Below are positions 1,664 through 64,000 of a stretch of 64,000 nt of DNA, piece by piece. Below the pieces are notes generated by a model. The model had not been told where the DNA came from. It worked only from the letters and a program-made list of their open reading frames with translations, and did no database searches. Source of the DNA: Ophelia neglecta (taxonomy: Eukaryota). Position numbers and translations under genes: made by a program. The stretch is taken from positions 806,001-870,000 of the forward strand of contig CBDIWN010000008.1 in assembly GCA_965285935.1 (NCBI GenBank), read 5' to 3'. Position 1 is the first letter of the stretch, and each line of letters starts with the position of its first letter.

Positions 1664-4600
1664 TCTTTTGTAGATTTGGCAACACGAATGGATGTGTGTT
1701 TCCATGTCTGTGCACTACTGGTTGTGACAGGACGACATGGGCGTGTTTGTCCCCAGGATTATGTCAGTTGGACGATCCCTCGACAGCCGGAATAAGGAGA
1801 ACCGGGGCTGGCTGTAGAATAGGTAAACCTTTCCGTTTTTCATTACGTTGGACACATTTTAACAACCCATTAATGTGTTTACTACATTGGGAATATAGAT
1901 GCAATTAGTTGCTCACAAATATCGAAAAATTTCGGAAAGAAAGCTTTTTATCAATGTATCAATATTTTGTTTTAAATTGATAACCACAATCAAGATTAAA
2001 TAGGACTAAATTTCCAAAACACGAATAGTAGGAATAACATAGTTGAAGGTTCACATAAACCGTTAAAAGAATAAACAAAATTGATTGACTTAGGTATTAT
2101 TTACAGTGTTAGACACTGAATTCCCAGTCACATTATTTGCCGGATCACCAATACTACTCACAGAACCGGCAGACGATTACAAATACTACTTACACAATGA
2201 CGAGAGTAGTTACCGGGGAGACGATTACAAATACTACTCATACAAAAAACGAGAGTAGATATCTGACAGACGATTTAAATCAGTAGTCACGAACGACGCA
2301 TTAAATCGCTCCCAATTCGTCCCCACAATTATAACACAATCAGGGAAGATATGTTATGGCCTATATTACCACACTTTGCATTCATTGTTCATTAAGAATT
2401 GGGGAAAAGACATAAATGAAAGTAGAAAAGAGCGGATAACAAATGTTACTATTCACTGATATTGAAATTTCTATGGATATGTAATGTAGCTCGGGGAAGT
2501 CCTACCAGAATGGACAATGGGATAACTCCCACGCGGGTTTACAGTGGATGGTATTATTACCAATAGCATATACGAATGTGAAAATCTGCATTTCTAGTTC
2601 AATTACAATTGGGACAAGCCGGACAAAGTGTACAGCCGGGAGAACTTTAAATACAGATACAGTTAATTGCTAACATTGAATTTGTTATTGTTAGGTAATG
2701 TAGCCCTTGGAAAGATTGCGTATCAGAGTGGACAGTATACTAATTTACGCGCTGGTCTGGCCGTTGACGGATTCATCACAACGAATATAAGTCGGTGTGC
2801 ACACCCTGACGCTGGGCCAGGGAAAAGATCTTGGTGGTACGTCGACCTCCTAGAGTTCTACACGGTTGTCAGTGTCACCATTTTTAACAGAAAGGATATA
2901 CAGTCCAGGGCCTACAGTAAGTTAGTGTAGCTTAAAATGGTTATAATGTTTTATTTCTAGTGAACCTGACCTTTCAGACAGTTTGATAATTTGTTATGAT
3001 CAGGTTATAAAACAAAGGTAATTTTATTTCGAAGCATACAGTTAAGTGAGATATTTGAGGAATTATATTGTTTGGACAAACGAAAATTTACACTAGTTTA
3101 TGACTATGGTCAAATGATGGCCGTATCTCTTTATGATCCAGGGAACAGCCTAGCATACTACTAATTGGTCAAATTATCCGGAGAAAGACTGTCTAAGTAA
3201 GTTTTATGATTAAAAATGTAATAACCATCATTGTTTGATTACAAGTTAAGAAGTTCTTGACTGATTAATGCGTATGTGTTACTTGTTATGAAGGAATAAA
3301 CGAAATTTGCCTGTGCTGTTAAAATAATGAATTTAGGAGCACAAGCAAAAACTACAATTAAGATAATAATCCGGAAACTGGTAAAGCCCTCTAATAAAGT
3401 ACTGTTAGTGTTTCAGCTAACTTTTTCCATATCTGTGACTCTATGTATCTTTACCCCTTATCAGGGGTTTCAATTTGCTTATGACAACCGGGTGACAAAG
3501 TGTGAATTAATCTCGTCAATGCCAAAGACTAAGGCTGTCTAGGTTAACTATATGAGAGGTGGGGATAAGGGTGTAAGTCTATAAACCCAAACTACACATG
3601 GAAATTACCCTGGTTGATAGAGTTCGGATGCTTGTATGAGTGGGAATGTGGGAGAGGATAATTGAAATAATGTGAGGAGGGGATGGAAACATAAAATACA
3701 CAATTGTTTGTGTGATTGCGATTTTGATCGAAGCGTGACGCAGTAGATAATAACTAAATAACAATAACAGGTAAAGAGTTCATTCCACCCTCCCCCCCCC
3801 CTCCACCCCCCCCCCCCCCCCCGCAAACCTTCAGGGCTAAACCAAACGTATATAGTGTTAAACAAATTGACTTAGTCAAAGCTACGTTGGTCACAAACGT
3901 GTCAATAAAACAAAGGCAGGCGCCTCTGCATTGCTTTGAAGACTTTTTAGCATGTTGTGTAAAAGCTCCAGTTACTGATGGTGCTAGGACTTTGTTATAT
4001 CTCCTGCTGTTTTAATTAATAGAGCGAACAGGACAGTTTCGACTTGGAATAGGAAATGTGACTGATGGTGACAAGACTGATCTCTGCAAGGACTATACGA
4101 AAATCATACCTGAGGGGGGACACGACACCATACAGTGTAACTCACCAGTTACTGGCAGATACGTGACCATTATCCGAGATGCAAACGGATTTCAGCCCCG
4201 ATTTCTCGGACTGTGTGAGGTTATCGTTCAAGGATATAAACCAATCAGTACGGTCTTGTCCTCACTCTTTCCATCCAGTATTCGTTTTGACTTTGATCGA
4301 AATATATGGTGGCACTACATTTACTTTCATAATTACGTGTGCATACCTTTTTACAGGTAACACGGGGCATTAAAAATAAGCAAATACAGGGTGTAAAAAC
4401 TTATGGCGAATTATCACCTAGTTTTTGGATGTATCTTTTAACTTTAGTTTATCGAGCTTAGATGCTCAATTCTTAATTGCCTGTATTAATTAATTCAGAA
4501 AAATAGTACACCTAAAATCATTCTTATTTGGTTTATTCCTTTTTTTTTAACTAATGCCTGAAGGAAGCTGACGAATTATGGCAAGTTATGTCTAAGAATG

Positions 4601-7600
4601 TGACAATTCAACCATAATCAATGTCGAATGTTTAATTATTATAAACATAAGGTCGGGCCAAAATAGATACTAGATATCGACAATGTGTTTTGAATGATGA
4701 AATAACAAAACAAAAACCGCATATACACATTCAGACGCTGTTTATGATTTATTTATTGTTTTGTAGTTTGCGACAGTGGCAGATGTCAGTCTTGCAGTTC
4801 TATTTCTGGTTGCGAAAAATGTGCTCCGGGAAGTGAATACCCAGATTGTAAAAAGGGTTCGCGCTTTAATGCATTTTTATTTGGCTGGTAGTTATTTCCA
4901 TTTTTAATTTCTAGACATCACTGTTAGATGTAAATATCTAATAGGGGTACTATTTCTCCCTGTTATCTTCACCGCGTTCTTTATGATATATTTTACAGAA
5001 TGCGACGATAATGAGTATGGCGACAATTGTGGAGAACGATGTAGTGTGAATTGCTTTAGAAATAATTGGTCCACCAATCGATCATGTAATATCTCGAGCG
5101 GACGGTGCTTGATTAGCTGTAACGAAGATTATTGGGGTGACAGGTGTGAATACACGTGTAATATGAACTGTCGGCGAATAGTTGGTGAAAAAGTTTGTTC
5201 ACAAGGTAACGGTACTTGTACCCAGGGATGCCTGAACCCTTACTACGGTGACCAGTGTCAAAACTCCTGCAGTAGTGGATGTAGTGTCATCTCGGGCTCC
5301 AACACGTGTCACATTGATACAGGCGCGTGTAACTACGGCTGTCAAACTGGATTCTATGGCGATAACTGCAATAAATCATGTAGTAATCAGTGTATTGATG
5401 TCTGTGATAGTCATAGCGGGTTATGTAGTTGTACGATTAATGCTTACGGCGATACGTGCAATCATAACTGTAGTAGTCACTGTGAGACTATAGAAAACGC
5501 ACATATCTGTGAGAAGGACAGTGGAGTGTGTACTCATGGCTGCCAACTACCACCGTATAGTACCTGGTATTCTGGAGACCTATGTGACCGACCGATAAAT
5601 AAAAACTGTTTTCCTTAACAAAACAATTCAACGAAAAATGGACATATTGTTTAATTAAATTCAATCACTTATATCGATTTAATTGCGGTTGTTTTACAGT
5701 GTACTTGGCCTACCCATCGAACCAACCAATGAAGATTATCAGTACCACGGCAACATCTGTCACCATTGGCTGGCCTCACATCCTTGTGGTTTCAAATGCA
5801 AACACTAAATTTTATGGCTATAGAATTTATGCCATTACAGGAAACCGAAAAATATCTTTTGAGCATGCCATTTCCGAAAACAATATTTCGAAACAATATA
5901 ATCTGACATTAGATGGCCTACAGGAAAACACTGTATATGACATTAAAATTACCCTGTATCGTACAGTTTTGGGTAGAACAGAAGAGAGTAGAGATAGCTC
6001 GGTGGTTGTATCTGTAACTACAGGTAAACTTATGGGCACATTTGTCGTATCTTAGTAATAAGTGAAACATATTTAGCCAATAGAAAGATTGAATCTTACG
6101 TCAAGGTATATGTACGGCAATGTTCAATAGGTATTGTACGATGCAAAGGTCTATATGAGGAATTTGTTGCTACAAGTCATATTCCAGAACTACTGCTTTA
6201 TTTTAACCAGGGCAAACTTCGCCTCTCTCAACTGGCGCATTGGCAGGAATCGTCATAGCGGCTGTTGCAATTATCACCGCCATTGGCATTACTATTGGTT
6301 GTCTTATTATCAAGTGAGTTGTACCAGAATAAGGGACACTTTCTATTTTATTTTATTGAGCAACTACGGCATTACGGTACTTAAATTCTTAAGTTAAAAA
6401 AAACATATTTAACTGGTTTGATGTTATAAGGTCACTAGATATATGGTGATAGTAGTATAGATGAAAACTTGTAGCGTGAATTGGTGTTGTCAAACTGTTT
6501 CATATGTAAACAGGTCCCAAAAGCAAACCCATTCAAGGAATGAATCAACACAAAATGAGATTCAGGGTCAGCCTACCCAGGAAGTTGACTTCACTGACTT
6601 AAGCGCGTATGGCGAATCGTCTACGACACAAGGCGGCAATGGTAAGAGGTTTTTAATTGACATTTTTTAATTGATGAGGTTTCAACATTTAACCATAAAA
6701 TCATATATTTCATATGTCAAGGGTTTTCACGAGAATTATATTGAGAGAATACAAGACAATCTGTCAGAAATCAATGCTGATAAATTTGTTTTGGGAACTG
6801 GAAAATTGCATTTAAAATGCCGTTTTATCAATTTGAGATAATTAAGATATAGCGGCAGACGACTAATCTCTTTTTAGTATATGGGTGGATCTGTGAAAAT
6901 ATATGCCGATAAATTGGTAAATGGTTATGCCACATACAATAGCGCTTATGGGACATATTCTAAGATTGTACATGCATCCGAAAGTACGATTTTGGGGCAG
7001 GCGGCTATTAACGTGTTTTTGTTTGTTTAGCCGCAAACTGCGTTCTGGACAACACACATGTCAAAAATGGCAAACAAAGCTGAATGTTCTTGCAATGTAT
7101 AAGCAATAACATTATTGTAAGACATAGATGGGTTATATTGATAATTGTCTTGTGAACTTCTCTGACTGATCAAATGATCATTGTATACCAAAGAATACGC
7201 AAGTAATTTGGGGCTTTTTACTTTGTGCAGTTCTTTGCCTTAAGACATTTTTACTATCATGTTACAATGAAAAAAAGGTTTGGAGTTTTTGGGTTAAACA
7301 TTTCCATTGCCCAATGGAAATCACCATGGAATATGATTTTGCATGAATTTTAAATTGCATTGCAGTGTGCCAAAAGTATAAACCTATTTATGCAGTTCTT
7401 AATTTTCTATATTAGCTATATTTTCTATATTTCTATATCAGTTTCCATATAATTTCGTTTGGTTAATCACACTTAATGATCTTTTAATGCGTAAATAGTA
7501 TGGATTAAGGAATGTTTTTATATGCATTTCAGCCAATCTGACTGGAGAGGAAAATCCGACGTACGAACAGTTAAATATAAATGAAGACTATGGGAAATAA
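1664..7600 (+). CDS. Paralog A: F-type lectin / EGF-repeat / FN3 single-pass receptor with short Tyr-motif tail; 5'-partial, splice-donor lesion (secreted form or decaying gene)
   Basis: Exons 1664-1822 (Cys-rich, VFCRFGNTNGCVFPCLC), 2695-2916 and 4023-4247 (F-lectin: NVALGKIAYQS..AVDG..CAH..WWYVDL..VTIFNR / GRYVTI..LCEVIV), 4767-4856, 4999-5598 (5 EGF-like units), 5700-6023 (FN3), 6211-6313 (TM GALAGIVIAAVAIITAIGITIGCLII), 6514-6641, 7533-7600 (ANLTGEENPTYEQLNINEDYGK*). Intron phases match B and C. The donor after the large EGF exon reads AT, not GT. No signal-peptide exon found in the window. Confidence 0.85.
2150..2280. repeat. Imperfect ~49-bp tandem repeat
   Basis: agacgattacaaatactact.atac..aa..acgagagtag occurs twice, with partial flanking copies. 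Confidence 0.7.
2481..2588 (+). pseudogene. Degenerate copy of F-lectin exon 1 in an intron of paralog A
   Basis: gtaatgtagctcggggaag..taccagaatggacaatgggataactcccacgcgggttt..gtggatggtattattacc aligns with the start of the intact exons (e.g. 15913 gtaatgtagcgcttagaaagccggcctatcagagtgga..gcgggtttggccgtggacggtattattacc). It has indels and no acceptor AG. Confidence 0.75.
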
Positions 7601-9669: not shown

Positions 9670-9856
9670 AGGACTGATGAACCCGGGGTCAGTATAATGT
9701 GACTGGGTGGGGTTCCCTGTCTGGTGTCTACGACAGGTACACCAGTGAGGCAGTACTATAAAGAAAGCATTGAGCCCACTGTCACAAGTAGGCCAGACAG
9801 TGGTATGATCATATTTGTTGAAAGCCACGTAAAACCTTAAAACAACCAACCAACCT
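9670..9856 (+). mobile_element. Probable 5'-truncated invertebrate SINE fragment
   Basis: gtcagtataatgtgactgggtggggt..cagtgaggcagtactataaa..ttgttgaaagccacgtaaaacc followed by an (aacc)n tail resembles, from memory, the 3' half of SINEs common in molluscs. It is absent from the paralogous position near 22810. Confidence 0.55.
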
Positions 9857-11480
9857 AATCCTCACCGTCAGACACAAACATTTAATACGATACGTTATAC
9901 GATACACCCTATTACAGCACGAGCCTTGCCAGGTCTGCCCGCGGGAGCATAGAGTACCCACTGTGATCTATCTACTCTCCTGTGTCTTCCCCCTAGCTCG
10001 AAGTCTTATATTTTCTTTAATATCGTTTAAACCTGTGTACTTTTTTGTATTTACCGTATTAATGTGATCCGATGTGTTGTGCGCCAGGAACATTCTGTCT
10101 ATGTTCAAGAGGTAGTTTTAGGCTAAATTATATGAGAAAACATGTTTTAAGATTCCTATTCCTCGTTGCTTCTCTATACCTTCAAAGGGATGGCATGAGA
10201 ATATACACTTATAAAGTACACTGTAATGAATTGGGCTGCTGAGCCACCTTTCTATCGGATTACGAATAGGACAAAAAATACGGGTTCGATATGCCGCACG
10301 GGAAGACTTATATCTGCTCGTTATATCATTGGCATCCATATTAAAAATAGACGTGGGCGATACCGCCGCATGGGGGCGGCAAATACGTCGTGAAAGAGTG
10401 AGGTCATTTGGTAACACATTTGGTAGGACATGTTCTGAGGCATTTGCCTTCGTTACAGTCCCAGGTTAATAGGTGTGTTGTGCGGTATCAGAGAACGTAT
10501 GGCCAAAGAAAATTGAATAATTCACCATTAATCATAATATTGTCTACTAGATAATCCCTAAAACAGTTCCGAAGGCTTTCGTCTATTTTTAATCCCATGC
10601 TCGTTACAAGAGTTGAATGGGATTATATGACCCTGTTAACCGATCATGTCTGCATTATATACCATCAGGGTCGCGTGTCGATCTAAACTCAAAACACTAT
10701 TGCAAGTACCTTAAGGTGTGCAAATAAAGATGGATAGTGCTCACTATAGATAGGAAGAATTATCTTGAAAGAAGACGCATTGAAAGGACCCCCTCCCGTC
10801 TAATCTGTGATACTCGACATCCCATAGAAACCTCGTTATTATGTTTGAAATGTCGCTGATAATGATTTCCTTTTTTGTAGTTTTCCTCCAAAGCTTGTTC
10901 AAACGAAGATAAAACCAGTATCTTTGTATCATAGCGCGATGATCACCAGCCCTGCATGATACCTGACATAATCGTTTAAATAACGATTTAAGATTGATTT
11001 TCATACCCGCAACATATTTGACCAGGATTAAATTATATACGAAGATTATGGGAAGAAAACATATCGCATCTTCAATAAATACATAGTGGCGACAAATTGC
11101 GTTTTCAGGTTAATAAGCATTACATAAGACATATTCGTATGGATCCATTCTGAAATTCTTTCCGTTAATTCCTATGAGGCCAGTGACTGTCTGTCGAATG
11201 CAAAGGTATCTGATGTCTTCTATTCTGCTTCTTAGTTGATTTTATATGTGAAAATAGGCCCTTGTTCTTATGTGGCAAAAGCGTTTGTAACTTTATTTCA
11301 TAAAAATAAAATGTAAACGCATTGCGCTCAGTATAAATAAACCTGCTTCAAGGACCTTTACCATTATGTTCATGCTGGAATTGAGTTCCCGATGAATTAG
11401 AATAAATAGTTATGACATCCCTACAAACACCCCTGATTGTATAGCCACTTTGTTCGCTGCTAAGCGTGTTAAGTTTACTT

Positions 11481-11510
11481 AGTTCCAGACGACCGCTCAG
11501 CAAGGAGAAC
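11481..11510 (+). promoter_or_regulatory. Conserved splice-acceptor-like motif upstream of each signal-peptide ATG
   Basis: T-rich tract + AG followed by (a/g)cgaccgctc(a/g)g at 11481, 25321, 40531 and 58461. Orphan copies occur near 12565 and 38711. Confidence 0.55.
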
Positions 11511-11576
11511 GTTAAATTCATTTTTAATGTATAAACGTTCGGTAGATGTGCCTGTATGTATACGTGCTATTTGGAA

Positions 11577-14500
11577 ATGGCTCCTATCACGTGTCTGTGT
11601 TGGCTGGTCATTTCCAGCGTCTTTCTTTCAGCTAGAGTTGCTGGTCAGCCAGGTCAGTAGATACTACTATTTTCATTTTGCAATAACACAATTTTGTTGT
11701 TGGCAGTGGTATGATTCAGGATTCAAAAGTGTGGAGGCATCTTTTTGGCGATACAATGCAAGACGACAATAAATGAGCCAATGTTTTGTCACATGGAAAA
11801 ATATTAGTTAAAGTTGGTAACCCGTATGGTCAAAATGGTAAACTTTGTCGATAGATAAATCATACGGACCTTGAGCGTATGAAAATAAAATATGTATATT
11901 TGTAACATATGTATATATGTATATGCCACATCCGTCAGATGTTCCTCTTACATAACTGTTCCTTTTATGCTTTTCTGTGTATCGAGGATCCAACTCCGAA
12001 GGTAGACCTTAGTTGCACCGAAATATTATATACTAATTATAAAGAAAGTTAAAGTCAAAGTATTTAAATTATATTCGGCTGTAGTGGTCTGTTTATAGAG
12101 TTTACCGCTTTCACGTGTAACTATATCTAATACAACCCATCCTAATCCGACTGCATCTTATACCACCCGTCCTAATCTGACTATATCTTATACCACCCGT
12201 CCTAATCTGACTATATCTTATACCACCCGTCCTAATCTGAATTCATCCTATGGAACCAAACTACATCCTATAAAAATCTTCCTCATCTGACTACATCTTA
12301 TCAAACCCATTTTATTAGGACTTCATGTTATATGAAAATTGGCACATATGCCGAAATGAAAAGAACACGCCATTAGCATCATTTTATATGCAAAATGCAT
12401 ATGGCGTTCTTTTTTCATTCAGATTTTAAGGAGGGTAACATAAATGTGACAGTATGATTCAATGCAATATGAATTGGTAAAAATATATGGCATCGCTGCA
12501 AAAACGTTATCCTATACAAAGCCATGAAGTCGATGCTTAAACGGTGTGTATAGTGTTGTATTCACATTCAGGGCCGCTCGGAAACCAGGGTGTTAAGATC
12601 ATTTTAATGCACACACTAACTATAGCCATACCTATATTCCTCTCTAACCGGCTCATAATTCACTATAAACACTCGAATGGCAGTTATCTCATGGGAAGCA
12701 TGGCTTCGGTGTGACCCGAGACAACCTGTCACAAGCGAAATGCCGTCAGCTTTTGTATGTGTAATGCAATAAAGCTACGGTGAACGTTTGCCGGATCTTC
12801 GCCTGAAATTTAGAATATTAGGTGTTTAATATTACGAGGAGGCGCTGATAACCTCTAAATCCCTCAAGAGGATCCTACGTCCTGTAGATCTGCCAGGGAC
12901 CCTGACAATCTCTAAATCCGCCACGGCATTCTTTGCCTAAGAGCTTCAGCCCGTCACTGAAAGTTTGCTTGGCAAAAAGATATGCACATATAATGTCTTC
13001 CTTTTGTTGATTTTAACAGTAGACACGTAGCCCTGGTGTCAAGATGGCTGACGCGGGGATACGAATTCTGCAAGTTTAAAAGGTCATTTTTTTAGCTTCA
13101 CAGATAAATGTTCGACATATTTATTTCTTCGGGCTCTTGGAGAGTCAAACTACGATCAATGACTCCACTTAAGACTGCTCGTGCGTAGGTTCTAGTTACC
13201 ATTGTTTAGACCCACGCATTTAAACATTGCAAAGGCTTTGAGTGTTTAATTCCGCTCATCATAGGCTTGGGGCAATGTGCATCTGTTTCATCCCATCCAA
13301 TATTATCGATGTAAAACACCAATTCAAAACACACAAAGTCGAACTACGGTCAATTTCCCAGATGCCTTCTGCCTCTGCTGGCTTGTTCACGGGTATGTTC
13401 TTAATGTATTTAACAAATTTCATGGCATTTATATACACAGCAACTTGGTCCTCGCGGTAAAATAATGGGTATGGTCCAACCGTGCTGGTTTGTTTATTTG
13501 TTTATCACGGCATTGTCTTCTAGTAGTAGAGATGGCTTACACCTAGTTATTTTACAATGGGTGAAAATAGAATAATATTCTATTCTATTCCCTTCCAATC
13601 CCAATTTAATATTATTGAGCTGGTTAAGATTATTTTCATGTTCAGAGCATGGCACCCAGAAGTAATGATAGTGTATTTTTGTATCATTTAGCCACACGTC
13701 GCGTCCTCGAAGCTTGTTTTGATTAGAGGAGAGACATTGTAATTATTTGGTTTAAAGATGGCTGGTAAGAATAGTCATTCAGATCTGAATCTTTTGGTGC
13801 CGGTGTCTTTAAAGCCCTTTATCTATTGCATTGCCAATGAACATAGCTTGGGATTGCTTTCTGATGAGTTCGATTTAATGGACTAGTCTTTGCCAATGAT
13901 TTGCTTTGTGCGCCTGGAAGTTAGTGTATTGATTTCTGTTTTCAGTATTCGATAGCACCCTGTGTAAGATCACAGCCGCCGGTCGCGAGTACAATGGTAC
14001 ACTAGCCGTGACAACAAGTGGTATAATATGCCAGAGATGGGACAACCAGTCCCCTCATTCTCACACGTACAAAAACTCTAACAATTTTCCGGATTCGTCA
14101 TTGGCGGCAGCTAATAACTATTGCAGGAATCCTGACCCCGGATGGTTCGATGGTGTTTGGTGTTACACCTTGGATCCGAACACAAGATGGCAACTGTGTG
14201 ATATCCGATTCTGCTCAGGTAATCTATTCTGTATTTACCTATAACATGATTGTTTACTTTCATATACCTTGTCCGGTCAAAGTCCGATTTCCGAAACCAG
14301 CTGCACAAATAAACGATCGATGCGAGACAAAGATACGCAACCACACATGGCCCAATAGTCCGAAAGAAACATGAGCTGGTATAAATGCAAAACACGGAGT
14401 GGAATAATAGGTCAAAATTTTAAAAACAAAGATATAAGGGTTCTAAAGGCGATCGTGTAGACGATTTGGTTTGTTAGATACATGGCGATCTACTACGGAA

Positions 14501-17500
14501 ATAAAAGAAGGTTGGAATGGCCCAATAATTAGAAATTATTCTGAAATCACACTGACATGATATTGTTTGCCGCGTATCCACTCCCGTTGTTCAAAGAAGA
14601 TCCGCATGTATTTTGTAAGTCCGCATTTGTACACTGCGGAATAACTTCCGAAAAGCTTCATTGATTGTAGGACCAGCTCATCCAGAGCATTATTATATAG
14701 AACGGTTTATAGGATAATGCTGGTTGCGCTTTTCTATAGTATGAATGATAAACAATCCAACGACCGTAGCGTTTACAGGGAGGAATAAACAACGTTTGAG
14801 GAGATTGATGTTTTCTTTTATATGCGTTTTCCTATTTTAAGCTATGTTGCACACGCGTGGCGAGGTGAAATAGCCTTTGAGGACGTTTCAAATTTAGTAA
14901 TCGCCCTGCCATTCTACATAGGTGGGAACAACTCTTTAAACTAAGGCTTTGCTGTAAATATATTTACATTAACAGGAAATGAACACATATGTGTAATTCT
15001 TGTCAATTTATTTTAACTTATTTATTGATAAATAATATATGTATTAGTTACTAAAAGAATTTTATTTTTAGGGAAGGACGCGCAATTGTTAAGAATAAAT
15101 AGAGGGGATTTCAACCGGTGTTTCCACGGTGATATTCCTCTGGCCACAGTTTTAATGCCCATTATGTAACTCCTCTAATCTTTAGCTAGAAAATAGGCAT
15201 AATCCTAACATTTACACTCTCATATAAGCGCGATCTTGAATTTCTAGACCTGGTCGTCTACCTATTTACACCCAGCTTTTAACTTTGATATATATACCTT
15301 AGACAAAGTAATTGGATTATACGACAAGCATTGAAACAAATTAAAAGCGTATTTGTCTGCCAGTTTGTAGATTTGGCAACACGGCGGAATGTCTGTTTCC
15401 ATGTCTTTGCACTGCTGGCTGTGACATAACGACAGGAGCGTGTTTGTCCCGAGGATTATGTCAGCTGGACGATCCCACGACAGCCGGAATAAGGAGAACA
15501 GGAGCTGGTTGTGGAATAGGTAAAATTGTCGCTTTCGATTATGATAGTTGCGAGCCATGATAATTGTAATCATCATGAAGCGGATGAATGACCATTTTGT
15601 TTTGTCCGCCTGGTGTTCACTCCCGGTTTTTACTAAGCGGTTACCTGTTCGATATAAGTTAAGAAACAGCTCGATTTTTCTGGTTATTTTACCCGCATCT
15701 TTAAATCAGCAAGTGGGTGTATAATATGGAAGGCAGAAATGTATTTCAAATATGCCAGCGCACTCGGAGTGTCTATCAATAATTATCTACGGGTAGATAT
15801 AACGAAATTGTACATTAATTCCTCATTTAGAATTACGGTAACCAATGTAGAAGGCGGCGGATGCTGATAAAAAATCAAATAAGTTACTGACAATTTAACT
15901 TGTAATGTTTAGGTAATGTAGCGCTTAGAAAGCCGGCCTATCAGAGTGGAACCTGGAGGAATTCACAGGCGGGTTTGGCCGTGGACGGTATTATTACCGC
16001 TGACATATCCCAGTGTGCTCATTCTGACGCTAAGGCTGGGAACAGATCCTGGTGGTATGTCGATCTCCTAGAGACCTACACCGTTATCAGTGTCACCATC
16101 TACAACAGAAGAGGTTCACATTCCGGTTAGTTATATACTTTCAAGGTTTTATTTTTAACTTGACCTTCTGTCAGGGAGTGGGTTCAGGTGACATATCGAG
16201 AAATGTAAAATTGAAATGGACAGGATATAAAAGAAGGGTAATATACCTCTACCTTTATGACAATTAAGTGAGATACTCAAAAAAGTTTTTCAGAAAGAAA
16301 AAAAGTTTTTCAGAAAGAACGAAGATGTATACTGATGGGTAACTATGAAGGCTACACTACATATAATTTAGTGCCCAGCTCACTAGCTATTGGCTACATT
16401 ATCTTAAGAACTGGGCTTGGAAGAAACACCACCTAATAAAGGCCATGCAATGAACAATTTATTGTACGATCACTGCCTTTCTGCCTATTTGATATTTTTT
16501 TGATATTTTTTGGGGGTTCTTGTTATAACAGATTGGATGATTTTTGCCGAATAATTATTATCCAAATTATAATCATAAGTAATATTTGAGAAATAACTAC
16601 GGAAACTAGTTCCCGAGTACATTTGAACATGATAACTAGACTTCATAACTCGCCCAGTATGCCGAATTCGTCTCATTTGACTGTAGGCGTCACGGGATAC
16701 TGTGTTCACGGGTGACTCCATGCACAATGTATCGTCAGAAAAGAGACAAAAACAAGAGACACCACAGGGAAGTTACTACTGGCACTTTGAGACCGATGCC
16801 TTGAGATAATAACCAAAAACACCAGCATTGCCAGCATTTACCTTGAGATAGTTAGAATACATCAAGTTACTAATCTCACACAGACACTGGGCTATAAATG
16901 GTAACGGAGGCCATAGCGACTGATCTCCCAGAGGCAGGGTACATATTAAAAAAATTACTGACCCCTGGGGTAAAACTATTCCAGACTAGCACAGAAAGAT
17001 TGTTTGCTGCAAATGCAAACCGACTGTGGTCTACATTCCAGATATGACTTTTAACAACTGCAATGCTATGCTTATGTACATAAACATGACTAACAGAATT
17101 TTGCAATAAAAATTCACACTACCAACATTTTGTAGAAGTCTATGTCCTTTTGGCATATTATGCATATAAAGCCCCATCATTGATGTCGCAATTAAAGTAC
17201 TGTTATTGAGGTTGCAAGGGTTTTTCTTCTATTTCTTACAACTAGAGCGAACAGGACACTTCCGACTGGGAGTGGGAGACGTTACCGATGGTGACCAAAC
17301 CAGTCTTTGTAAGAACTATGCAGGCGTCGTACCTGAGGGAGGACATGACACCATAGACTGTAACTTGCCAGTTACAGGGCAATATGTCACCATAATCCGA
17401 GATGCAAATGGATTTGAACCCCACTTGCTTGGACTGTGTGAGGTTATGGTTCATGGATATAAACCAATACGTATGCTGAGTAGCAATATTTTTGTTTCAT

Positions 17501-20500
17501 AATGAAATTTTAATATAATGTTGCGGCTAACACTAAGCTTTCGTTCATGCAAAAAGTTTAATAACTAATATTATATTATTATCCGGTTTCTGCGTGGAAT
17601 TTTTGTTTGTTTGAGATCATACTGCTATAATTGGTTAATTTTAAATTTCATTATTAATTAATTAAGAAAAAAATCCATGGTAATATGATGGTTGCATTCT
17701 TTATTTGAGTATTGTAACTAATGGCTGATGACGCGGTTTGGTAAGCTAAAGCCAAGAATATAACTACATAGTTAGAACCAATGTTAAACGTTCCTTAACT
17801 AGTGTACATTAAACGTTGGGCCTAAATTATTATTAACGTTACTCATTGTTGTTTGATGGATAAATGTAAACAGAACTATGTACGGGCTATGTACTTGTAT
17901 GATTGGGTATCATGGAGAGCAGTGCGAGTACAACTGTATGGAGTACAGAAGTATGTACACATTCCGGTATTTAGTATGATTTGTCTTCCCATCGACAGAT
18001 TGTGACAGTGATCGTTGTCAGTCATGTAGTCCTCTTATTGGCTGCGACAAATGTGCTCCGGGAAGTAAATACCCAGATTGCAAAACAGGTAAATGAATTT
18101 TAGTATTTTCGATAGCGCTTTTCCTATGTAGTATTTGGAATTTTATTATGAGTGTTATATATCTAACTATTATCTGCCCCATATAATAATATACATGATT
18201 TGTAACCTTCTTTACAGAATGCGATAAAGAACATTTCGGCGACAATTGCGAAAAACGATGTAGTGATAATTGCCTAATAAATCGGGGGTCTAACTCTCGA
18301 TCATGTAAACTCTCTGACGGCGCTTGTCTCAATGACTGTAGAGAAGGCTTTTGGGGTGACATGTGTGATGGCACGTGTAATATGAACTGCCGGCGGATAG
18401 TTAGTGATGAAGTGTGTTCAAAAGATAACGGGAGTTGTACCCAGGGATGTCTGGACCCTTACTACGGAGACCAGTGTTTACAATCTTGCAGTAGTGGATG
18501 TAGAGTCGTCACGGGCTCCAACACGTGTCACATGCACACAGGGTCTTGTAATAACGGCTGTCTACCAGGGTTCTACGGCGCCCAATGCGATAAGACATGT
18601 AATAATCAGTGTCGTAGTCTCTGTGAGAGATACAGCGGGCTATGTACTTGTATGATTGGGTATTATGGAGAGCAGTGCGAGTACAACTGTAGTATTCATT
18701 GTGAGACAGTCGATAACACTCAGACCTGTGAAAAGGACAGCGGAGCGTGTAGTCACGGATGTCAGCTACCACCTTATAGTACCTGGTATACTGGAGATAT
18801 GTGTAGCCAACGCATAGGTAACAACTCGTTTTACTTAAAAACGATTCCACTGAACTGAATACAAATATACATTTACCTTCTTTTATGATTGTTTTACAGC
18901 GTACTTGGGTTACCCATCGAACCAAACTATGACAATCATCAACATCACAGCAACATCTGTCACCGTGAGCTGGCCCCACACAGTTGTTTTTCCCAAAGAA
19001 AACTTGCGTTTGTATGGCTACAGAGTCTATGCCATTACTGGAAATCAACAGACTTTATCTGATCATAAAATTGGTACCGACAGTGCTTTGAAAATATATA
19101 ATCTGAAAATAACTGGTCTGCAGGAAAACACTGTTTATAACATGAAGGTGACTCTGTATCGTACAGTGTCGGGAAGAACAGAGGAGAGTCGAAATAGCTG
19201 CATGGTCGTATCTGTTACCACATTACCAGGTAAATATGCGGGTATTTAAGGTCGTTCTTATATATGTAAAGAGAAAATTTAGAAAATGGGAAGCGCGAAA
19301 CTTGAAACAATGAATGGGCATTAAAATACATGCTACAAAACGGCTACCTGTTTAGGGTGCTGAGCTGTTAGTGCGTGGCACTTTGTGGATATGACTGCCA
19401 TGCGGGTTTGGGCGCATGCCGCATCAGCGCCGCAACGGCGGTACAGCCTATTTCACAGGAACCAAGAAATACATTATATGTTGGCCATTTTACCCATGTG
19501 TTATATTCCAATAAGCTGTTTATGTTGACCAGGGCAAAATTATCCACTGGAATCGGGCGCATTGGTAGGAATCGTAATAGCGTGTGTTGCATCACTCACC
19601 ATCGTTACCATAGTTATAGGCTGTCAATTTTTCAGGTAAGTGAAATTGATATTTTCTTATTGATTACATGTAACAGTTAAGGCATTAGGACAAATTCATT
19701 TCTTAGTTAAAACATCCCAATAGAATGTTATCTCGTGTATTATTTGTCTATTGTTATTATATGCATGCCTGCATATATTCATGTAGTCCCTTGCTGGAGT
19801 GTAGATATTTTATGTGGAATTGCTGTCATTTTTTCGCCGGTCCTACTTTTTCATATATGCAGAGTAAGAATTCACCAACGTTCAACGAACGAATCACAAC
19901 CAACTGACCACCAGGGTAACGCTACCAAAGGAGTTGAGTCCACTGAATTCAATTTTTACGAGGAACCGTCACTGGAAGCAACCGGCTATGGTAAGAGCTA
20001 ATGAGCTATATGGGTTTCTGTTTTATAATAATTCTTTATTTAATTTTACTGCATTACGAGGTCTGACCAAATAACGTAACGGGACAAAAAGATCCTCCTT
20101 TAATACCCCATGGTCACAGACTAATATTGGGAACTAGGGAAGTACATGTCTACCTAAATGTAGTTCTTCACTTTGATCGGTGTCGTGTATAGCGACAGTT
20201 AAGTATTTAGGTTCATATATTAGGTGCATAATATCTTAAAACTTATCGTTGTTTATAATAAGTGCATTTCCACTAATGGATGACACTGCTCGGGCAATGA
20301 TATTCCTTGCACTTTAATATATATGACTGTAAGGGAAGCGGGGGGCTTGGTCAGTTTCAACACACATGTTTCTACACGACACCATTATCAAGCTTGAAAA
20401 TGCAGGTTTCTGTGAATTTCGCTACGATTTATACATGCAATAATATCGCAGAAAACATGGGTTTTAACACTTGTTTAAGCAAATAGCAATGAACAATCTA

Positions 20501-20760
20501 CTTTCGAAGCTTTTCGTTAGTGCAGATTTCTTGGCCATGAGGAACACTATGGAATAGTGTTATGTTCTTTATTTTGCCATATTCCATTTCACTTGGAATT
20601 GTAGTCCTGTATGATCTTTAATAAATGTAATGTGCCATTTAAGGATGGTTTTATATGTTTTACAGCTAACCTGACGGAAGATGGGAAACCTATGTACGAA
20701 CAATTTCACCCAAATTCAGATTATGAAGAAATAGACAAGATAGGTGGCTCCAAGCAATAA
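11577..20760 (+). CDS. Paralog B: kringle + F-type lectin + EGF repeats + FN3 single-pass receptor with tandem Tyr-motif tail (~762 aa)
   Basis: Exons 11577-11652 (signal peptide MAPITCLCWLVISSVFLSARVAGQP), 13946-14218 (kringle), 15364-15519, 15913-16125, 17246-17470, 17999-18088, 18218-18817, 18900-19229, 19533-19635 (TM GALVGIVIACVASLTIVTIVIGCQFF), 19863-19990, 20666-20760 (ANLTEDGKPMYEQFHPNSDYEEIDKIGGSKQ*). All introns GT-AG; total 2289 nt, open frame. Confidence 0.88.
12121..12330. repeat. 30-bp minisatellite (ctatatcttataccacccgtcctaatctga)
   Basis: Four near-identical 30-bp units at 12121-12240, followed by degenerate units. Confidence 0.9.
13946..14218 (+). CDS. Kringle domain exon of paralog B (phase 1-1)
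   Basis: Flanked by ttttcag| and G|gtaatc. Translation LCKITAAGREYNGTLAVTTSGIICQRWDNQSPHSH..NNYCRNPD..VWCYTLDPNTRWQLCDIRFC has six Cys and the NYCRNPD and WCYT kringle motifs. Confidence 0.92.
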
Positions 20761-22104
20761 ACAATGGCTTATACAATTAAATGTTCGATAGGTTGCCTCA
20801 TTCTTCTTTGCATAGGGAATTCTCACCCCTAAAACTAAATGTAAATACGGCCTTAGAAGACGTAGTAAGCATTAAATTTATGATTTATTTGTATAGATTA
20901 CTAAAATAAATTTTCCTATCGCAATTCAATGATACGATTAGGACGAAGGCTACAAAAATAAACCAAAAAATATGACTTTAAAATCTTGACTTTAAATTTG
21001 TTCTGTACATTATGATTTATTTGCACAGTATCACTTGAAATTGATAATCGAATGAGTAAATGTTTTTCCCAACTAAAGTGCAACACTAAAGCATTTTTCA
21101 ATCAAACTACGATGATTTCTCACGTCCCTTTTAAGTTGTGTCAGGCCTTAGGGTATACTTGTTCATTTAATTTAACGTGAAGTGTTCATGAATTACGTTA
21201 TATAATTCAAGTAACGAATTTTACCTATCACGATGAATAATGAACAATTGACATACAAAGCGTGTTCATTTGTTCATATTTTTGAGGCCAGTATCGCATT
21301 GTAGAGCCATTTTTTAGGTTCCACAAGCTGTGAAAGAAAACCTGTTGGCTGGTATAGAATACGATTGCTGAATTGTGATTGCCGTAAATTTGGTACATTT
21401 ATTGCTTTTGTGAATGTTTGGCACACAAAATTGTATAATCGTAAGTAAATCAACTTTAATCAGAATAATATTAGCGCCTCTAATGTAAATTTTATTGTTT
21501 TCCGAGATCATATGTCTGTACTTATAAAATCGACTACATATATGGACATTTGTATTAAAGTGAGTGCACATATAGCTAGATAAAACAACATAATATGCCG
21601 AAAATATAGTATACGGCTTGATGAAACGGCATATTATACAAAATAACTATAGTATTTGCATTTGACCATTCAATGCCATTTGTACTTGGAAGGGAGGGAA
21701 AATTGAATTCAAGCATAAAGAATTTGTATGTGATCCTATTCTTAAAGAGTATGTCTTATATCCAATGTATATTCTTAAGACTTGACAAAAGCTGTTTATG
21801 ACATATTTTTATTCATATCTGGAAACGATATAATAAAATATATTTTGTAAAAGAGTTCAGTATGATTTAACTCGACCTTGAAAAAGTAGGTCAAGGTCAA
21901 AATCTGATAATGCGATCAGAATCGAAGCACATCACTTCCTATACGCTCCCAATGAAGGTTGAAGCCCTAGCTGCTCAAATAAAGAAGTGAAGTGACAAAG
22001 TCGCCAACTTTTGTTTGGTGTTACTATGGGTCCTTTGTGTATTCTGATTCGCACCAATTGTAAATTAGCTCTTGTCTGACTTTATTTCGTGTCCTTACCC
22101 GCAA

Positions 22105-22192: not shown

Positions 22193-22194
22193 CT

Positions 22195-43600: not shown

Positions 43601-46600
43601 AAAGACCATCATTTGATTCTTATTTGAACTGTTTAAAGACATGCAAAGTGTAAAACCGCTGACCCGTTAAGAGAGCGTGCTCAAACTTTATACAAATTAA
43701 TCTATAATATGCAACCCACTAATAATAACATATATGAAATTTCAGGTGTTTAGGTTAGTGGTAATATTAAGTTTTATTCGATACTGCCCTTTGCCTCTGC
43801 ATCAGTTTAGATACTGTCATCTGCCATTACTATCAGCACAAATTTTCCATTCTGAACCCCATTCCACTGAGAGCGCCTTGTTCATAGCGCTCGATTCTGC
43901 ACAGATTTAAAGTCACTACTTAGCTCCCGGTAAGGCCTATGTGCCACACCTGGCAGGCAAATTCCAACACTGGACGCACAATTGAGTTATATTCTACCAA
44001 TAAATCCTGAGGTGACAGGACACTTTTTGGGCTGTTTTAAACTGTATGAATGGGGAGAGAAGCTCGGGTCATAATATAAGATAAGTGGGTCTCCAATGGC
44101 AGATCGCTAGAGAGCTATGCTCCCAGCAAATTACAGTGAAAATGTCTATCTTCTATTCTGACATTGTGATATGGGGTTATTTTTGGCCGAGATCACCATT
44201 TCTTTGGTTTTCCTGGCGTTCAATTTTGTTATTTTAGGCCAGTTATTTATTTTCACAGAGCGTACCGGTAATTTTCGCCTTGGAGTTGGTCACCAAACTC
44301 ACGGGGACGTTACAAGTCTCTGTAAATTGTAAACGGGAATCGTTCCTCAGGGAGGAAATGTTACCATACAATGTAACCCGTCTCTTAACGGCAGATACGT
44401 CACCATTATCAGAACGCCCGAGGCCACTGTTGAACCTCAATTCCTTGCTTTGTGTGAGGTGATTGTTCATGGTTATAAACCTATTGGTATGTCAAACCCT
44501 CACATCTCGAATATATAACTTAATAAAAAGTGTGTTTATTTTAAATATTTGCTTCATGCACAAAGAGTAAATTTCGATGAGTAGAATCTACCTTTTGGTT
44601 ATTGTCGCCAATTACGAATTTAAAATTTTATCGGTGGGCTGTTTACATTTGATATTAGATAGATATAAACGCACTACGGAAAATTATATCAACCCTCTAA
44701 ATTTACCTTGTTGTTTGCCTGAAGCTTGCAGTTGCTTTTTAATGCCCACTTGTTATTACAGTGTGTGAGAGTAGCCGTTGTGAGTCGTGCGATCCTTTAA
44801 TTGGCTGCTCTACATGTACCCAGAACTCTAAGTACCCAGAGTGTAAAGGTAGGAGTACCCTGTTAACTTTCATTATATGTTAGACAGTTTGAGGTAGGCT
44901 TACCATGTTAACGTACATTATCTTTTAGACAATATCAAGGTAGGCTTACCGTGTTAACGTTCATTATATGTTAGACAGTGCCATAATAGTAACATCCCGT
45001 ACCATGCTAAATAATAATAAACGTTATAAACTTGAATTATGACAAATGATCTATCTTACAGAATGTGACAAAGACCATTATGGTATCAACTGTAATTACC
45101 AATGTAGTGCGAATTGCCTCTTTGTTCAGGATCCCAACTCTCGGCAATGTTCTCTCTCTGATGGAACTTGTATGAATGGGTGTATTCCAGGCTATTGGGG
45201 AAATACATGTAATAGTGGGTGCAGTACTAACTGCCACCGTATTGATAGCTTAGAAGTCTGTAACCGACACTCTGGTAGTTGTACTCAGGGGTGTAACGCC
45301 CAATACTACAGAGATAAATGTGAGATGAGCTGCAGCAATGGATGTAATGATATCTCGGGCTCCAACATTTGTCACAGAGTATCAGGAGATTGTAACAGCG
45401 GTTGTAAAAGTGGCTATTATGGTACGATGTGTTCCTCAACCTGCAGCGCAAATTGCGTTAATCAGATATGTTCTGTCGATGATGGACGCTGCACTAGTGG
45501 CTGTCTGGAACAATACTTTGGAGACCAGTGTCAGAGCCAATGTAACCATAAATGTCTTGTTGTCACAGGCTCTAACATTTGTCACAGAGATACAGGACAT
45601 TGTAACAAGGGGTGTCAAAATGGTTACTACGGTGATACATGTACCTTACCCTGCAGCGACTACTGTGATGGTATAAATGGAAAACCTATATGTGCCCGAG
45701 ACAACGGAACATGTTCCCGGGGTTGTAAGGATGGCAGGTTCGGTGGATATTGTGGCTCAGAGTGCGGTTCAGGTTGTAAGCCGGTCAACAAGACAGCCTC
45801 TGGGTCTTGTGACCAGTTTAGCGGAATTTGTAACAATGGGTGTAAGGACGGTTTTTATGGCGAATACTGCAATAAAACCTGTAATAATCAGTGTCTCGGT
45901 GAGCATAGTAACCCCGGGTGTGACAGGTATAGCGGGGCGTGCGTCTGTCACAGTGGTTTTTATGGGATAAACTGCGATCAACCATGTAGTAGTCACTGTG
46001 AGGCTGTAGATTACATAATGGCTTGTCATCAATACAGTGGAGCATGTAGTGACGGTTGTCAGCTTGTATCGTACCATACATGGTATACTGGAGATCAGTG
46101 TATCCAACCTATTAGTAAGTGTAATCGGTTTCATTCCACTTATTGCATTATTTAAGAAAAAACATTTATAGAAGAATGTAAAATAATCAATGTTCTACCA
46201 GCAAGGGCCCTTGGCTGATGGTTCCTGATGATTTAACGGTCTATTCTCGATTAATGATTTTGCTTTACTACCGTCTATCTACTCCATTTTTATAATTAAC
46301 GAAAGCACATTAATGAAAACACTATCTACTCCGGTTTTGTTAATTAATGTAAACACTATACAAGAATTTTGTTGTTTCATGCGAACAGAATACGTGGAGT
46401 ATCCTGAGGGAAACACAGTTACCATTACCAAGTTGCAAACTGACAGCGTAACCATTGAATGGCCGCATGTTAAAACTATTCCATTGAATACAGCGGCTGT
46501 CTTTGGCTACAAAATCACTGCGTACAGTACAAATAGGACAAAGGTTGAACCGTTTATGATAGCAATCAGAGAAGATGACATCTTAATGAAATACAACCAA

Positions 46601-61600: not shown

Positions 61601-64000
61601 CCATTTAAGAGTTGTACTTTTCAATATATGTTGAAGAATGCTGTGAAAAAAAACAATTTAGAAAGCTGGCGTGAGCAAAAATATAATGGCCAACTACATT
61701 TGTGATTCAAATATATCATATTTGTCTAAAGTTCTGAACAGACTGTTGCCCTGAGACTGTCTGAACATTTGGTTGTAAATGAGCTCGGAGAGACGTTCCA
61801 GACAACCTATAAACAATAACATAGTGCAGAATAATATTCATTAATTTGTTCATGTCTTTTTATATATCTCGATCTGCCAGCGGCTTTGAAACATTAATCA
61901 TTCATCTCTGCTGGATCGTATACAGCTGAGAGTATGTATATAGGAAGAGAAGCCCTCAATTGGTTTAAATCATACTTGGGTGGTCTTACCGAGAACGTTG
62001 AGATTTGTAGCGACCTGTCTTATCCTACTTTTTTTAAATGTGAGGTTTTCAACAGGGACGTATTCTAGGACATATTTTGTTTCTTATATGCACACTCCCT
62101 TTGGGGGATATTGTAAGTTTTTCTCAACGTATCCACTTTCGTCGATATGCAGATGATACACAATTATATTCCTCGCTTTGATGGTGGTTCATCTGACAGG
62201 GAAACACCATGGAATACAAAGCTAGAATTATGTATCAAAGATTAAAGGGAATGGATAGCTACAAGCTTCGGCCAAAATATTACGACCAGTTAATAGATAA
62301 TGCTGCCATTGCCATTGGAGAAACTGAAGTCATTTGGTGTAAATCAGCAAGAAGCATGAGAGCTATTTTTCAAAGAATGTGGCTCCTGATTAAGCACATT
62401 GATGGCATGTGTTCTAGTGGCTCTGTATACGTAGGAAATATGATTGTTATGGCAATGAATAAGACTGTGATATTACTATAATATAGTATATAGAGCTGTA
62501 AAAACCTATAGTGCAGGAAGAGGGCGGGTCTACACGTGTCAAACAATGTTTGCATGCCCTTTTTCCGATCCCTACCCGAACCAATAATGTCTCAACCTCT
62601 TCCCGCGTCAGACCTGGAGTGAAATGCAAATAAATATTTATGCCCTACCAGAGAAATGCTTGTATAGTATGCATCGCATACAATATGATGCTTTTAAATT
62701 TCTTGTTTTGTATTATTCTATGATTATGAGGATCGTTTTATGCATTTGCTGGTAAAGTGTATTTTCCGTTCTGTTCGCCCTTGTGGTTTACTCAATAGGT
62801 TATTCTATGATTAAATACAGCATAATAGACCAGACTGTTTTATCAGTATTTTGTATAAACAGGTAATATAGCGAAGGGAAGGCCGGCATATCAAAGTGGA
62901 CAAGTTTTCAATTTAGCCGCTGATCTGGCCGTCGATGGTAGAATCGTTACATGGGCATTTCATTGTGCACATCCTGATGCTGGGCCTGGGAAGAGAGCCT
63001 GGTGGTACGTCGATCTAGAGGATATCTACACAGTTGTTAGTGTCACCATCTTAAACAGAGAGGATTCTCCATATCATAGTAAGAAAAGAAAAAAAACGAC
63101 GGCCATATCTAAAGACAGAAATAGAATAATTATCTTAGGTGCACGATAGTAGCATCAATCACATCATTACTTATAATTGTTTTCGTCCCTCCCATGCTGT
63201 TCTCATTGGCAAAAAAATAAATTCTAAATTGTACTTTATGTGTATGCTTTTGATAGACCACCAGTACGAGTATTGCTACTTACACATCTAATATATTTTA
63301 GCATTAAAACTAATTGAAGTCCCATGAGTTGGAGTTCCCATTTAATACAGGGGTCGAAGGCAAATGTAACCTAGGCTTGTGAATAATTCCCTCTAAAACA
63401 GGATACAACTTTAATACAAAATCATTTGCGAAGCAACCATCGCAAAACTAAATATTTTGTGTCCTTGATTGTTAGCTACGGTACTGGTAAAGCAAGCTTA
63501 ACACACAATGTGAATACGTGGTGAAAAGGTAAAGAGGTATTTCCCACAACACACTGTTTTTGGTATTAAATCTTCCACTATTTTATTAGAATTCATTCTA
63601 TAAGTGTAAACTTCACCAACAAAATAGCCTGGTGAGCTACTTAAAAACATGTCAACACAACCTCGAGATAATGTACACATAGCCCTTAAGCAAAACACCA
63701 TTTGTTGATTTATAAATTAATTATCAGTCACACCCATATTCGTCTGTACAACACATGATTCAAGGTTACTGTAAGTGTCGCTCTGAGGACTATGTATTTG
63801 TATCCAGGAATACCATTTTACAGATCTTACAGCTAATTTTCGCCTTGGAGTTGGATCCGAGACAGACGGTGATTTAACAAGTCTCTGTAAGAATTATACA
63901 GGAGTCGTTCCTAGAGCAGGAAACGACACAATATATTGTGACTCGCCCCTCAGCGGCAGATACGTCACCATTATCAGAAATGCAGGCGGGTATCAAGTCC
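58606..64000 (+). CDS. Paralog E: F-type lectin receptor family member, 3'-partial (runs off the window)
   Basis: Exons 58606-58678 (signal peptide MSPIIYICLLVSSSVYRSRVTGQT), 60882-61034 (Cys-rich), 62863-63078 ([39 protein letters not shown]), 63824 to window end ([29 protein letters not shown]). Confidence 0.88.
61480..62450 (+). mobile_element. Decayed CR1/L2-clade LINE reverse transcriptase fragment in an intron of paralog E
   Basis: Frameshifted RT motifs in the correct order: LDLLP..KECLESLAPVYANIVNL..LKNAV, LSKVL..RLSEHL..FQTTY, LDL.AAF, QG.ILG.ILF, RYADDTQLY (about 62143-62170). Confidence 0.8.

Follow-up and report, generated by a model that had tools for sequence, protein, structure and literature searches.

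Our analysis of a 64,000-nucleotide stretch of the Ophelia neglecta genome (contig CBDIWN010000008.1, positions 806,001 to 870,000; termed the window in the following) revealed five F-type lectin domains (FTLDs), whose presumed ligand-binding loops differ strongly from copy to copy on a nearly constant framework. A motif scan with frame extension across the 64-kb window placed all five domains, here called paralogs A to E, on the plus strand, and each of them is split over two exons. The lectin exon borders were read from the DNA; all exons are flanked by AG and GT, all junctions are in phase 1, and the exon 1 coordinates given here count the bases of the split codon. By alignment to the eel agglutinin, the stretch following QSG corresponds to complementarity-determining region (CDR) 1 of that lectin, the stretch following VDG to CDR2 and the stretch following NR to CDR4. 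Exon 1 of paralog A (2695-2916) comprises CDR1 (QYTNLR), CDR2 (FITTNISR), the histidine of a CAH motif, the arginine of an NR motif and the start of CDR4 (KDIQSRAY), and its exon 2 (4023-4247) opens with the split codon for lysine, followed by RTGQFR and further on by GRYVTIIR and LCEVIVQGYKPI. Paralog B occupies 15913-16125 (exon 1, with TWRNSQ, IITADISQ and NRRGSHS) and 17246-17470 (exon 2, with glutamine at the arginine position of GRYV), and paralog C 30682-30897 (exon 1, with QYGNLI, LLIKDDLT and NRGQPPYY) and 31631-31855 (exon 2, from the motif scan and border reading). For paralog D, exon 1 was read in the same way at 42990-43205 (with HWNKLV and IVSTHISQ), and exon 2 at 44259-44486 contains an in-frame TAA at 44330-44332 where its relatives encode tyrosine. 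Exon 1 of paralog E (62863-63078) encodes QVFNLA, RIVTWAFH and NREDSPYH; its exon 2 runs from 63824 to 64000, where it is cut by the window end, the remainder was read from locus L019, and a leucine stands in place of the last arginine of the sugar-binding triad. Paralogs D and E begin with NIA rather than NVA.

Self-comparison of the window and tblastx between the units gave one common order of elements, namely a cysteine-rich EGF-like exon, the FTLD, a small cysteine-rich exon, EGF-like repeats, an FN3 domain, a membrane anchor, cytoplasmic exons and a tail with tyrosine motifs that ends in the stop codon. In paralog B, tblastx between units and self-blastn placed the cysteine-rich exon at 18001-18084, the EGF-like repeat exon at about 18217-18843 and the FN3 exon at about 18902-19252, and tblastx of B against C added a membrane-anchor exon (GALVGIVIACVASLTIVTIVIGC) at 19514-19642, cytoplasmic exons that follow it within 19514-20787, and a terminal exon with the tyrosine-motif tail and the stop at 20629-20787, all of these on the plus strand. 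Blocks equivalent to the cysteine-rich, EGF-like and FN3 exons of B were also found downstream of the A, C and D lectins. The FN3 exon of the A copy (5699-6055) matched Pfam fn3 at E=3e-6, and NPxY-type motifs occur in the tails of A (at 7553) and C (at 35203). All tails seen in the window are of the short type, and a pattern scan for phosphatase signatures gave no match. No Pfam EGF family was matched by the EGF-like exon at E<=0.1, and a comparison of the B exon with proteins of 0.55-1.75 times its length gave five candidates of which none was scored, a blank that says little. Because every unit comes with a set of downstream exons and a stop that it shares with no other, the five FTLDs are in all probability the heads of five separate tandem genes for predicted single-pass membrane receptors, rather than parts of one multi-repeat gene. 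In their design we take these receptors to resemble engulfment and scavenger receptors of the Draper/CED-1/MEGF10 type with NPxY and YxxL tails, with which they share EGF-like units of the pattern C..G(Y/F)(Y/W)G..C, a single anchor and a short tail with NPxY-like and tyrosine motifs. A lectin head and FN3, both present here, are not known from receptors of that type.

The family to which the five genes belong is very large. A six-frame search of the genome with exon 1 of A returned 442 candidates; 150 of them were scored, none with an E value above 1.4e-15. Contig C7 carries scored copies at 87-93.6 Mb and C16, the contig with the window, over its full length of 0.96 Mb, and others reside on C5 and C2. 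In the short contigs of read runs from one sample, word depth over conserved exon parts of D (42957-43241 and 44211-44495) was up to about 25 times that of introns, which fits many copies with identical 31-mers.

By sequence similarity the domains belong to the FTLDs. With phmmer against the PDB, exon 1 of A matched striped-bass FBP32 (3CQO) at E=6.5e-10 and, less closely, eel agglutinin (1K12) at E=8.1e-7, and exon 2 of A matched 3CQO at E=2.1e-7. Pfam PF22633 was hit by each exon separately, at 25.4 bits (exon 1) and 17.2 bits (exon 2), both below the cut-off of 27.8, and the nearest ESM Atlas clusters are named Fucolectin and come mostly from Mollusca. A search of protein representatives returned 910 proteins at E<=0.001; the closest are uncharacterised gastropod and amphioxus multi-FTLD proteins with 44-53% identity, and no representative shared more than 53% identity with the window FTLDs.

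Comparisons within the family were made on 38 distinct copies of exon 1 and 31 of exon 2. These stem from 45 matches extracted from the window and from loci L001-L050, of which seven were removed as exact duplicates; three further anchors had been dropped, namely L009, which is broken by a stop, L049, which runs off its locus, and a spurious motif match in L033. Seven copies are without exon 2, either for want of sequence at the end of the locus or for want of a motif match. In the alignment to the eel lectin the histidine of CAH corresponds to His52 and the arginine of NR to Arg79, and the arginine that opens exon 2 corresponds to Arg86 as placed via the C-terminal domain of 3CQO. This triad is largely kept: the histidine is present in 36 of 38 copies, the first arginine likewise in 36 of 38 with a displacement by one residue in the other two, and the last arginine in 30 of 31, paralog E being the sole exception. 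According to the excerpted text of PMC5712786, the fold is held together by the disulfides Cys50-Cys146 and Cys108-Cys124 and by an Asp64-Arg131 salt bridge (eel numbering). The residues for all three links were found at the sequence level. All four fold cysteines are invariant (the cysteine of CAH in 38/38 and the three of exon 2 in 31/31 copies), so that equivalents of both disulfides would be present; the aspartate of WWYVDL occurs in 37 of 38 copies (asparagine in L044), and the arginine of GRYV in 25 of 31, with glutamine in all six B-type copies. In exon 2 of paralog B itself (GQYVTIIR, codon 17377-17379) this glutamine replaces the residue aligned with eel Arg131, the partner of Asp64 in a salt bridge called strictly conserved in this fold (PMC5712786, excerpt). 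The cation motif hhDGx was also recovered, as AVDG in 37 of 38 copies and GVDG in one, with Asp-Gly in 38/38; its x position is F, I, L, I and R in A to E, i.e. not small and hydrophilic.

F-type lectins have a rigid sugar-binding fold, and the loops at its rim set the fine specificity. The initial annotation of the window had described a nearly constant framework with divergent loops, and the sequences bear this out: the strings after QSG and VDG listed above are exactly those quoted there, and mean identity among the five copies in exon 1 is 82% in the framework and 32% in the loops. Variable columns make up 28 of 31 in the loops vs 12 of 42 in the framework (Fisher p=9e-8), a test that is generous because the loop columns were partly picked for their variability. 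Across the split codon, from the first arginine onwards, the copies read RKD-x7-R (A), RRG-x4-R (B), RGQ-x5-R (C), RGD-x5-R (D) and RED-x5-L (E), as annotated, which leaves 9, 6, 7, 7 and 7 residues between the two motif arginines in A to E (the last being leucine in E); across the copies, CDR4 spans 5-9 residues between the two arginines. The canonical spacer of this loop was found in B alone, but B has glycine for the acidic residue, and an acidic residue at Arg+2 is present in 23 of 38 copies. Also correct were the absence of a Cys-Cys pair from the loop (0/38 copies) and the position of an intron, 0.7-1.3 kb long, inside CDR4. In the alignment, the His-to-Arg spacing is 28 in 38/38 copies compared to 26 in eel agglutinin, CDR2 falls short of its eel counterpart by two residues, and the stretch after the histidine exceeds it by two. 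The further claim that the sugar-binding motif differs in every paralog is overstated: spacing and neighbouring residues do vary, but His-Arg-Arg is kept in A to D. It is at the 3' end of exon 1 that CDR4 differs in length, and when A and B were aligned by eye, the B donor fell on the A donor after a 9-base gap, which in these two sequences suggests an indel and not a slid splice site.

Selection was estimated with a Goldman-Yang-type codon likelihood (F3x4), computed by pruning on fixed nucleotide maximum-likelihood trees (GTR+G4) for the two exons separately. The global ratio of nonsynonymous to synonymous rates (dN/dS, omega) was 0.56 in exon 1 and somewhat lower, 0.44, in exon 2. When the 38 copies were partitioned, the exon 1 framework had an omega of 0.24 and CDR1 one of 2.67 (p=0.009 against omega=1); in exon 2 the loop DANGFQPRFLG reached 1.14 and the remaining partitions stayed below 1. 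Site tests (beta>alpha at p<0.05) identified 4 of 73 codons in exon 1 and 0 of 74 in exon 2, and purifying selection was detected at the same level for 23 codons of exon 1 and 19 of exon 2. Among the triad residues the histidine (p=2e-4) and the first arginine (p=0.013) are under purifying selection, and the last arginine shows a trend (p=0.06). The four fold cysteines, the AVDG motif and the aspartate of WWYVDL are likewise kept by purifying selection. A comparison of M1a with an M2a-type model without gamma rates gave a likelihood ratio test (LRT) statistic of 37.0 in exon 1, where ten sites were marked, all of them in CDR1-4, and one of 7.9 in exon 2. With gamma-distributed rates the test remained significant for exon 1 (LRT 16.0, p=3.4e-4), with 12.6% of codons in a class at omega 2.67. 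Under this model sites with a posterior above 0.7 were columns 14 and 17 (CDR1), 31 (CDR2), 40 (CDR3) and 67 (CDR4). Column 67 aligns with eel Cys82, and column 31 adjoins positions aligned with Phe45/Tyr46, where the placement of gaps is uncertain. In the eel lectin, Cys82 touches the fucose ring (PMC5712786, excerpt). Codons with omega above 1 are clustered at the presumed binding site, the pattern of bindin-type FTLDs. The signal was strongest in the E-type clade (14 copies), with an omega of 11.5 for CDR1 (p=6e-4), 1.83 for the pooled loops (p=0.02) and 0.50 for the framework; the six B-type copies are nearly identical in their loops and too similar for a clade estimate. A minority of rim codons, above all in CDR1 and in the E-type lineage, therefore looks positively selected, which gives partial support to diversifying selection. 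The synonymous rate in CDR2 and CDR4 (exon 1 columns 25-32 and 65-72) is 1.7-1.9 times the exon average, which could be due to old lineages kept in the loops, to hidden micro-conversion or to alignment noise in CDR4.

A second process became apparent when the trees of the two exons were compared on the 31 copies with both exons. The exon 1 data rejected the exon 2 tree (log-likelihood difference 112.7, approximately unbiased (AU) test p=6e-14), and the exon 2 data rejected the exon 1 tree (log-likelihood difference 85.4, Shimodaira-Hasegawa (SH) test p=1e-4). The conflict does not come from convergence in the loops, because the framework columns of exon 1 alone still rejected the exon 2 tree (log-likelihood difference 63.7, AU p=6.6e-6, SH p=0.0013); exon 2 likewise rejected the tree of the exon 1 framework. 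Inside either exon no recombination signal was detected by the pairwise homoplasy index (p=0.54-0.96). Such reciprocal rejection indicates that paralogs have exchanged halves of the binding site, as in bindin-type FTLDs. The breakpoints fall between the two exons and would lie in or near the intron that bisects CDR4.

At the TAA of paralog D (44330-44332) no other letter is listed in the contigs of three runs from one sample, and an identical stop is present in the D-type copy L036 (contig C16, at about 85-95 kb); the D-type copy L013 encodes tyrosine at this position, and D and L036 are otherwise open. This suggests that the stop was probably duplicated with the gene, or else the exon may be skipped. 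Both E, with its change from arginine to leucine, and D, with its stop, are probably impaired copies. Other letters reported for CDR2 of D (43073, 43076 and 43079) cannot be distinguished from admixed paralog sequence and were not used as alleles.

Taken together, we consider it reasonably probable that the family presents a mixed picture, in which a constrained scaffold and triad carry loops that are mostly near neutral, a subset of codons is positively selected, and half-domains are exchanged within a family of FTLD-headed receptors. A number of observations weigh against the adaptive part of this reading. Omega was 0.90 for CDR2, 0.85 for CDR3 and 0.69 for CDR4, each below 1, and 1.05 for the pooled loops, which is not different from 1. 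At a false discovery rate of 5% only 2 of 147 codons survive, one in CDR1 (column 17) and one in CDR3 (column 42), and in the gamma model exon 2 has no positive class (LRT 0.18). In the D-type clade (six copies) omega was 0.55 for CDR1, 0.94 for the pooled loops and 0.17 for the framework. Pairwise loop dN/dS among A to E ranges from 0.30 to 0.91 and exceeds 1 in none of the pairs (8 of 10 pairs gave a value), with 0.05-0.24 in the framework and a synonymous divergence that is saturated (0.65-2.4) among these five copies. Stops are present in 3 of the 38 aligned copies, to which L009 adds a fourth that was dropped before alignment. The strict fucose motif, printed as HX24RXDX4(R/K) in the excerpted text of PMC5712786, is satisfied by 0 of the 5 window copies, and no RNA run with the sequence of gene A was found. 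With respect to the data themselves, the 38 copies of exon 1 and 31 of exon 2 were drawn from at least 150, the boundaries of the loops were partly set after their variability had been seen, and the codon likelihood was computed with code of our own rather than with PAML or HyPhy. Most of the loop divergence among A to E looks old and near neutral, and is compatible with weak constraint. The differences between these five copies are therefore not to be taken as proof of adaptive diversification.

As an alternative, the family could have evolved by birth-and-death drift only, with no selection for new ligands. After massive tandem duplication, a stable beta-sandwich would simply put up with changes in its surface loops, and many copies would be redundant or in decay. 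The omega values of the pooled loops and of CDR2-4, the missing positive class in exon 2 and the lost triad arginine of E agree with such a scenario. So do the variable loops on the presumed bottom side of the domain (exon 2 columns 10-18 with an omega of 0.74, and the flagged column 53 of exon 1) and the stops in D, L036 and L015, with 4 of 150 scored genome matches carrying a stop inside the match. Neutral drift cannot, however, produce an omega above 1, so the CDR1 values both overall and in the E-type clade count against drift as the only process, as does the M2a-type test that stays significant under gamma rates. The flagged sites, moreover, all lie in loops that touch the ligand in the eel structure, and the constraint on the framework and the triad argues that most lineages were functional. 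We therefore regard an explanation by drift alone as rather unlikely.

A different possibility is that sugar binding has been lost and that the domain binds a protein or lipid partner in the manner of the F5/8 type C fold, for example in self/non-self or gamete recognition, with the loops tracking that partner. The deviation from the fucose motif would fit here, with the His-to-Arg spacing enlarged by two, a canonical CDR4 spacer only in B and there without the acidic residue, and no Cys-Cys, and so would the shortened CDR2; relatives of the same fold bind phospholipid (PMC5712786, excerpt). Without a sugar site it would be difficult to account for purifying selection that has retained His, Arg and Arg in almost every copy, and the C-terminal domain of FBP32 lacks the Cys-Cys pair yet retains the triad, which makes a complete loss of sugar binding improbable.

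The initial annotation had gone further and proposed diversifying selection for different glycans, in its full version on all ligand loops including the sugar motif, with another glycan for each paralog. In favor of this proposal, every loop differs among A to E, the length of CDR4 is variable, and the ten sites marked without rate variation all fall into CDR1-4. Divergence is indeed far from evenly spread over the domain and a class with omega above 1 exists, so that the proposal stands for a subset of exon 1 codons, those of CDR1 above all. It is not supported for the loops as a whole, given the pooled omega near 1, the values below 1 for CDR2, CDR3 and CDR4 and the pairwise loop ratios below 1. 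Once rate variation is allowed, about 13% of exon 1 codons and none of exon 2 stay positive, the triad is conserved under purifying selection, and B-type copies hardly differ in their loops; pervasive selection of this kind is accordingly quite improbable. As to a single gene with five lectin repeats spliced in variable number as in oyster bindin, the phase 1-1 lectin exons could be joined in any number, but this candidate was rejected as extremely improbable, since each lectin pair has a separate EGF-like exon in front of it and, within 1-4 kb behind it, a separate series of EGF, FN3, anchor and tail exons up to a stop codon, and 6-8 kb of unrelated DNA lie before the next unit.

In the mixed picture that we prefer, recombination or gene conversion would re-pair N-terminal halves, which carry CDR1-3 and the start of CDR4, with C-terminal halves of other paralogs. 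The conserved triad would still hold the axial 4-OH of fucose or of a similar sugar, and CDR1, CDR2 and CDR4 would contact subterminal sugars, so that changes there could retune specificity, as may be extrapolated from the eel and bass structures (PMC5712786, excerpt). From the architecture of the genes, the lectin domain would be displayed on a signalling receptor. The variable loops would then act as an extended site that chooses the rest of the glycan, which could give many specificities on one signalling chassis. A more far-reaching interpretation, which we put forward tentatively and consider doubtful at present, is a germline repertoire of hundreds of lectin-headed receptors for immunity or self/non-self recognition, renewed by selection on CDR1 and contact sites and by shuffling of half-domains through the CDR4 intron. 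In an animal that lacks antibodies, a germline-encoded repertoire for glycan recognition would be expected to look like this family. If the interpretation is true, the family would be an invertebrate recognition system that joins the diversification tricks of bindin with a signalling chassis similar to that of paired receptors. Should the selected loop positions alter glycan preference, the family would offer a tractable model of innate receptor diversification and a source of lectins with new specificities.

Individual elements of this picture have precedents. For eel fucolectins or oyster bindin, the literature already describes variable loops on a constant FTLD frame, positive selection at the pocket and recombination in mid-domain (PMC5712786, excerpt). 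The FTLD of the Pacific oyster sperm bindin is under positive selection at few sites, eight in number, around the sugar pocket, recombines in mid-domain at the intron that splits it, and includes copies without the full basic triad, all of which is similar to the situation described here (PMC5712786, excerpt). Bindin is, however, a secreted acrosomal protein encoded by one or few genes with 1-5 tandem FTLDs and with allelic and splice diversity (PMC5712786, excerpt), whereas the Ophelia neglecta family has at least 150 tandem paralogs, in each of which a single FTLD is combined with EGF, FN3, anchor and tail. This predicted membrane-receptor architecture argues against a secreted protein of the bindin type, and bindin-like processes would here take place in a different setting, that of at least 150 tandem membrane receptors with signalling tails. 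In eel fucolectins (1K12 and eFL-1 to 7 of A. japonica) the triad is conserved and the isoforms vary most in CDR1 and CDR2, but CDR4 is strictly kept including the Cys82-Cys83 bridge (PMC5712786, excerpt). The same fold cysteines and cation motif align with those of the window FTLDs, in which, unlike in the eel proteins, CDR4 varies in length and Cys-Cys is absent from all 38 copies; the eel proteins are moreover soluble serum lectins. Among solved structures the best match, shared by both window exons, is to striped bass FBP32 (3CQO), which has a C-terminal domain without Cys-Cys but with the triad kept (PMC5712786, excerpt). It differs in being a soluble two-domain lectin, and the intron inside CDR4 on the binding face is a feature of the genes described here. 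FTLD expansions are known in molluscs, hemichordates and amphioxus (PMC5712786, excerpt), and among the top full-text literature matches listed, no paper describes an FTLD-EGF-FN3 receptor architecture with a family this large.

Among the best full-length matches in the database were P0002 of Babylonia areolata and P0001 of Nucella lapillus, with 44-48% identity to exon 1. In P0002, an FTLD that lacks Cys-Cys and has a long CDR4 precedes an EGF-like motif; unlike the window genes, P0002 combines eight FTLDs in one protein. P0001 (2865 aa) is a string of 37 half-domains similar to exon 1 that end just past the first arginine, which suggests the same intron position in a gastropod; as it stands, the protein is most likely a mis-joined gene model across a similar tandem array.

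Some further observations concern the surroundings of the five genes. The exons of A are identical on contigs C7 (locus L001) and C16. Likewise, upstream of A the two contigs carry almost identical B-type copies in corresponding places, L015 (C7:90969807-90973013) and L011 (C16:787051-790257); L015 carries a TAA in lectin exon 1, where its counterpart L011 is open. Contig C16 may represent either a haplotig of C7:90.5-91.1 Mb or a recent segmental duplication of that region. Upstream of paralog B, an open frame on the plus strand at 14008-14244 encodes a Kringle domain (Pfam PF00051, E=4.2e-17, 62.7 bits) with the sole YCRNP match in the window; it lies 1.7 kb before the B lectin, and none was seen in front of the other four lectins. 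Finally, a block of 1.6 kb occurs twice with 86% identity, at 10485-12081 between units A and B and at 24346-25945 between B and C. This block is the best-conserved stretch of the window that is not an exon, and probably represents either repetitive DNA or an intergenic segment that was duplicated.

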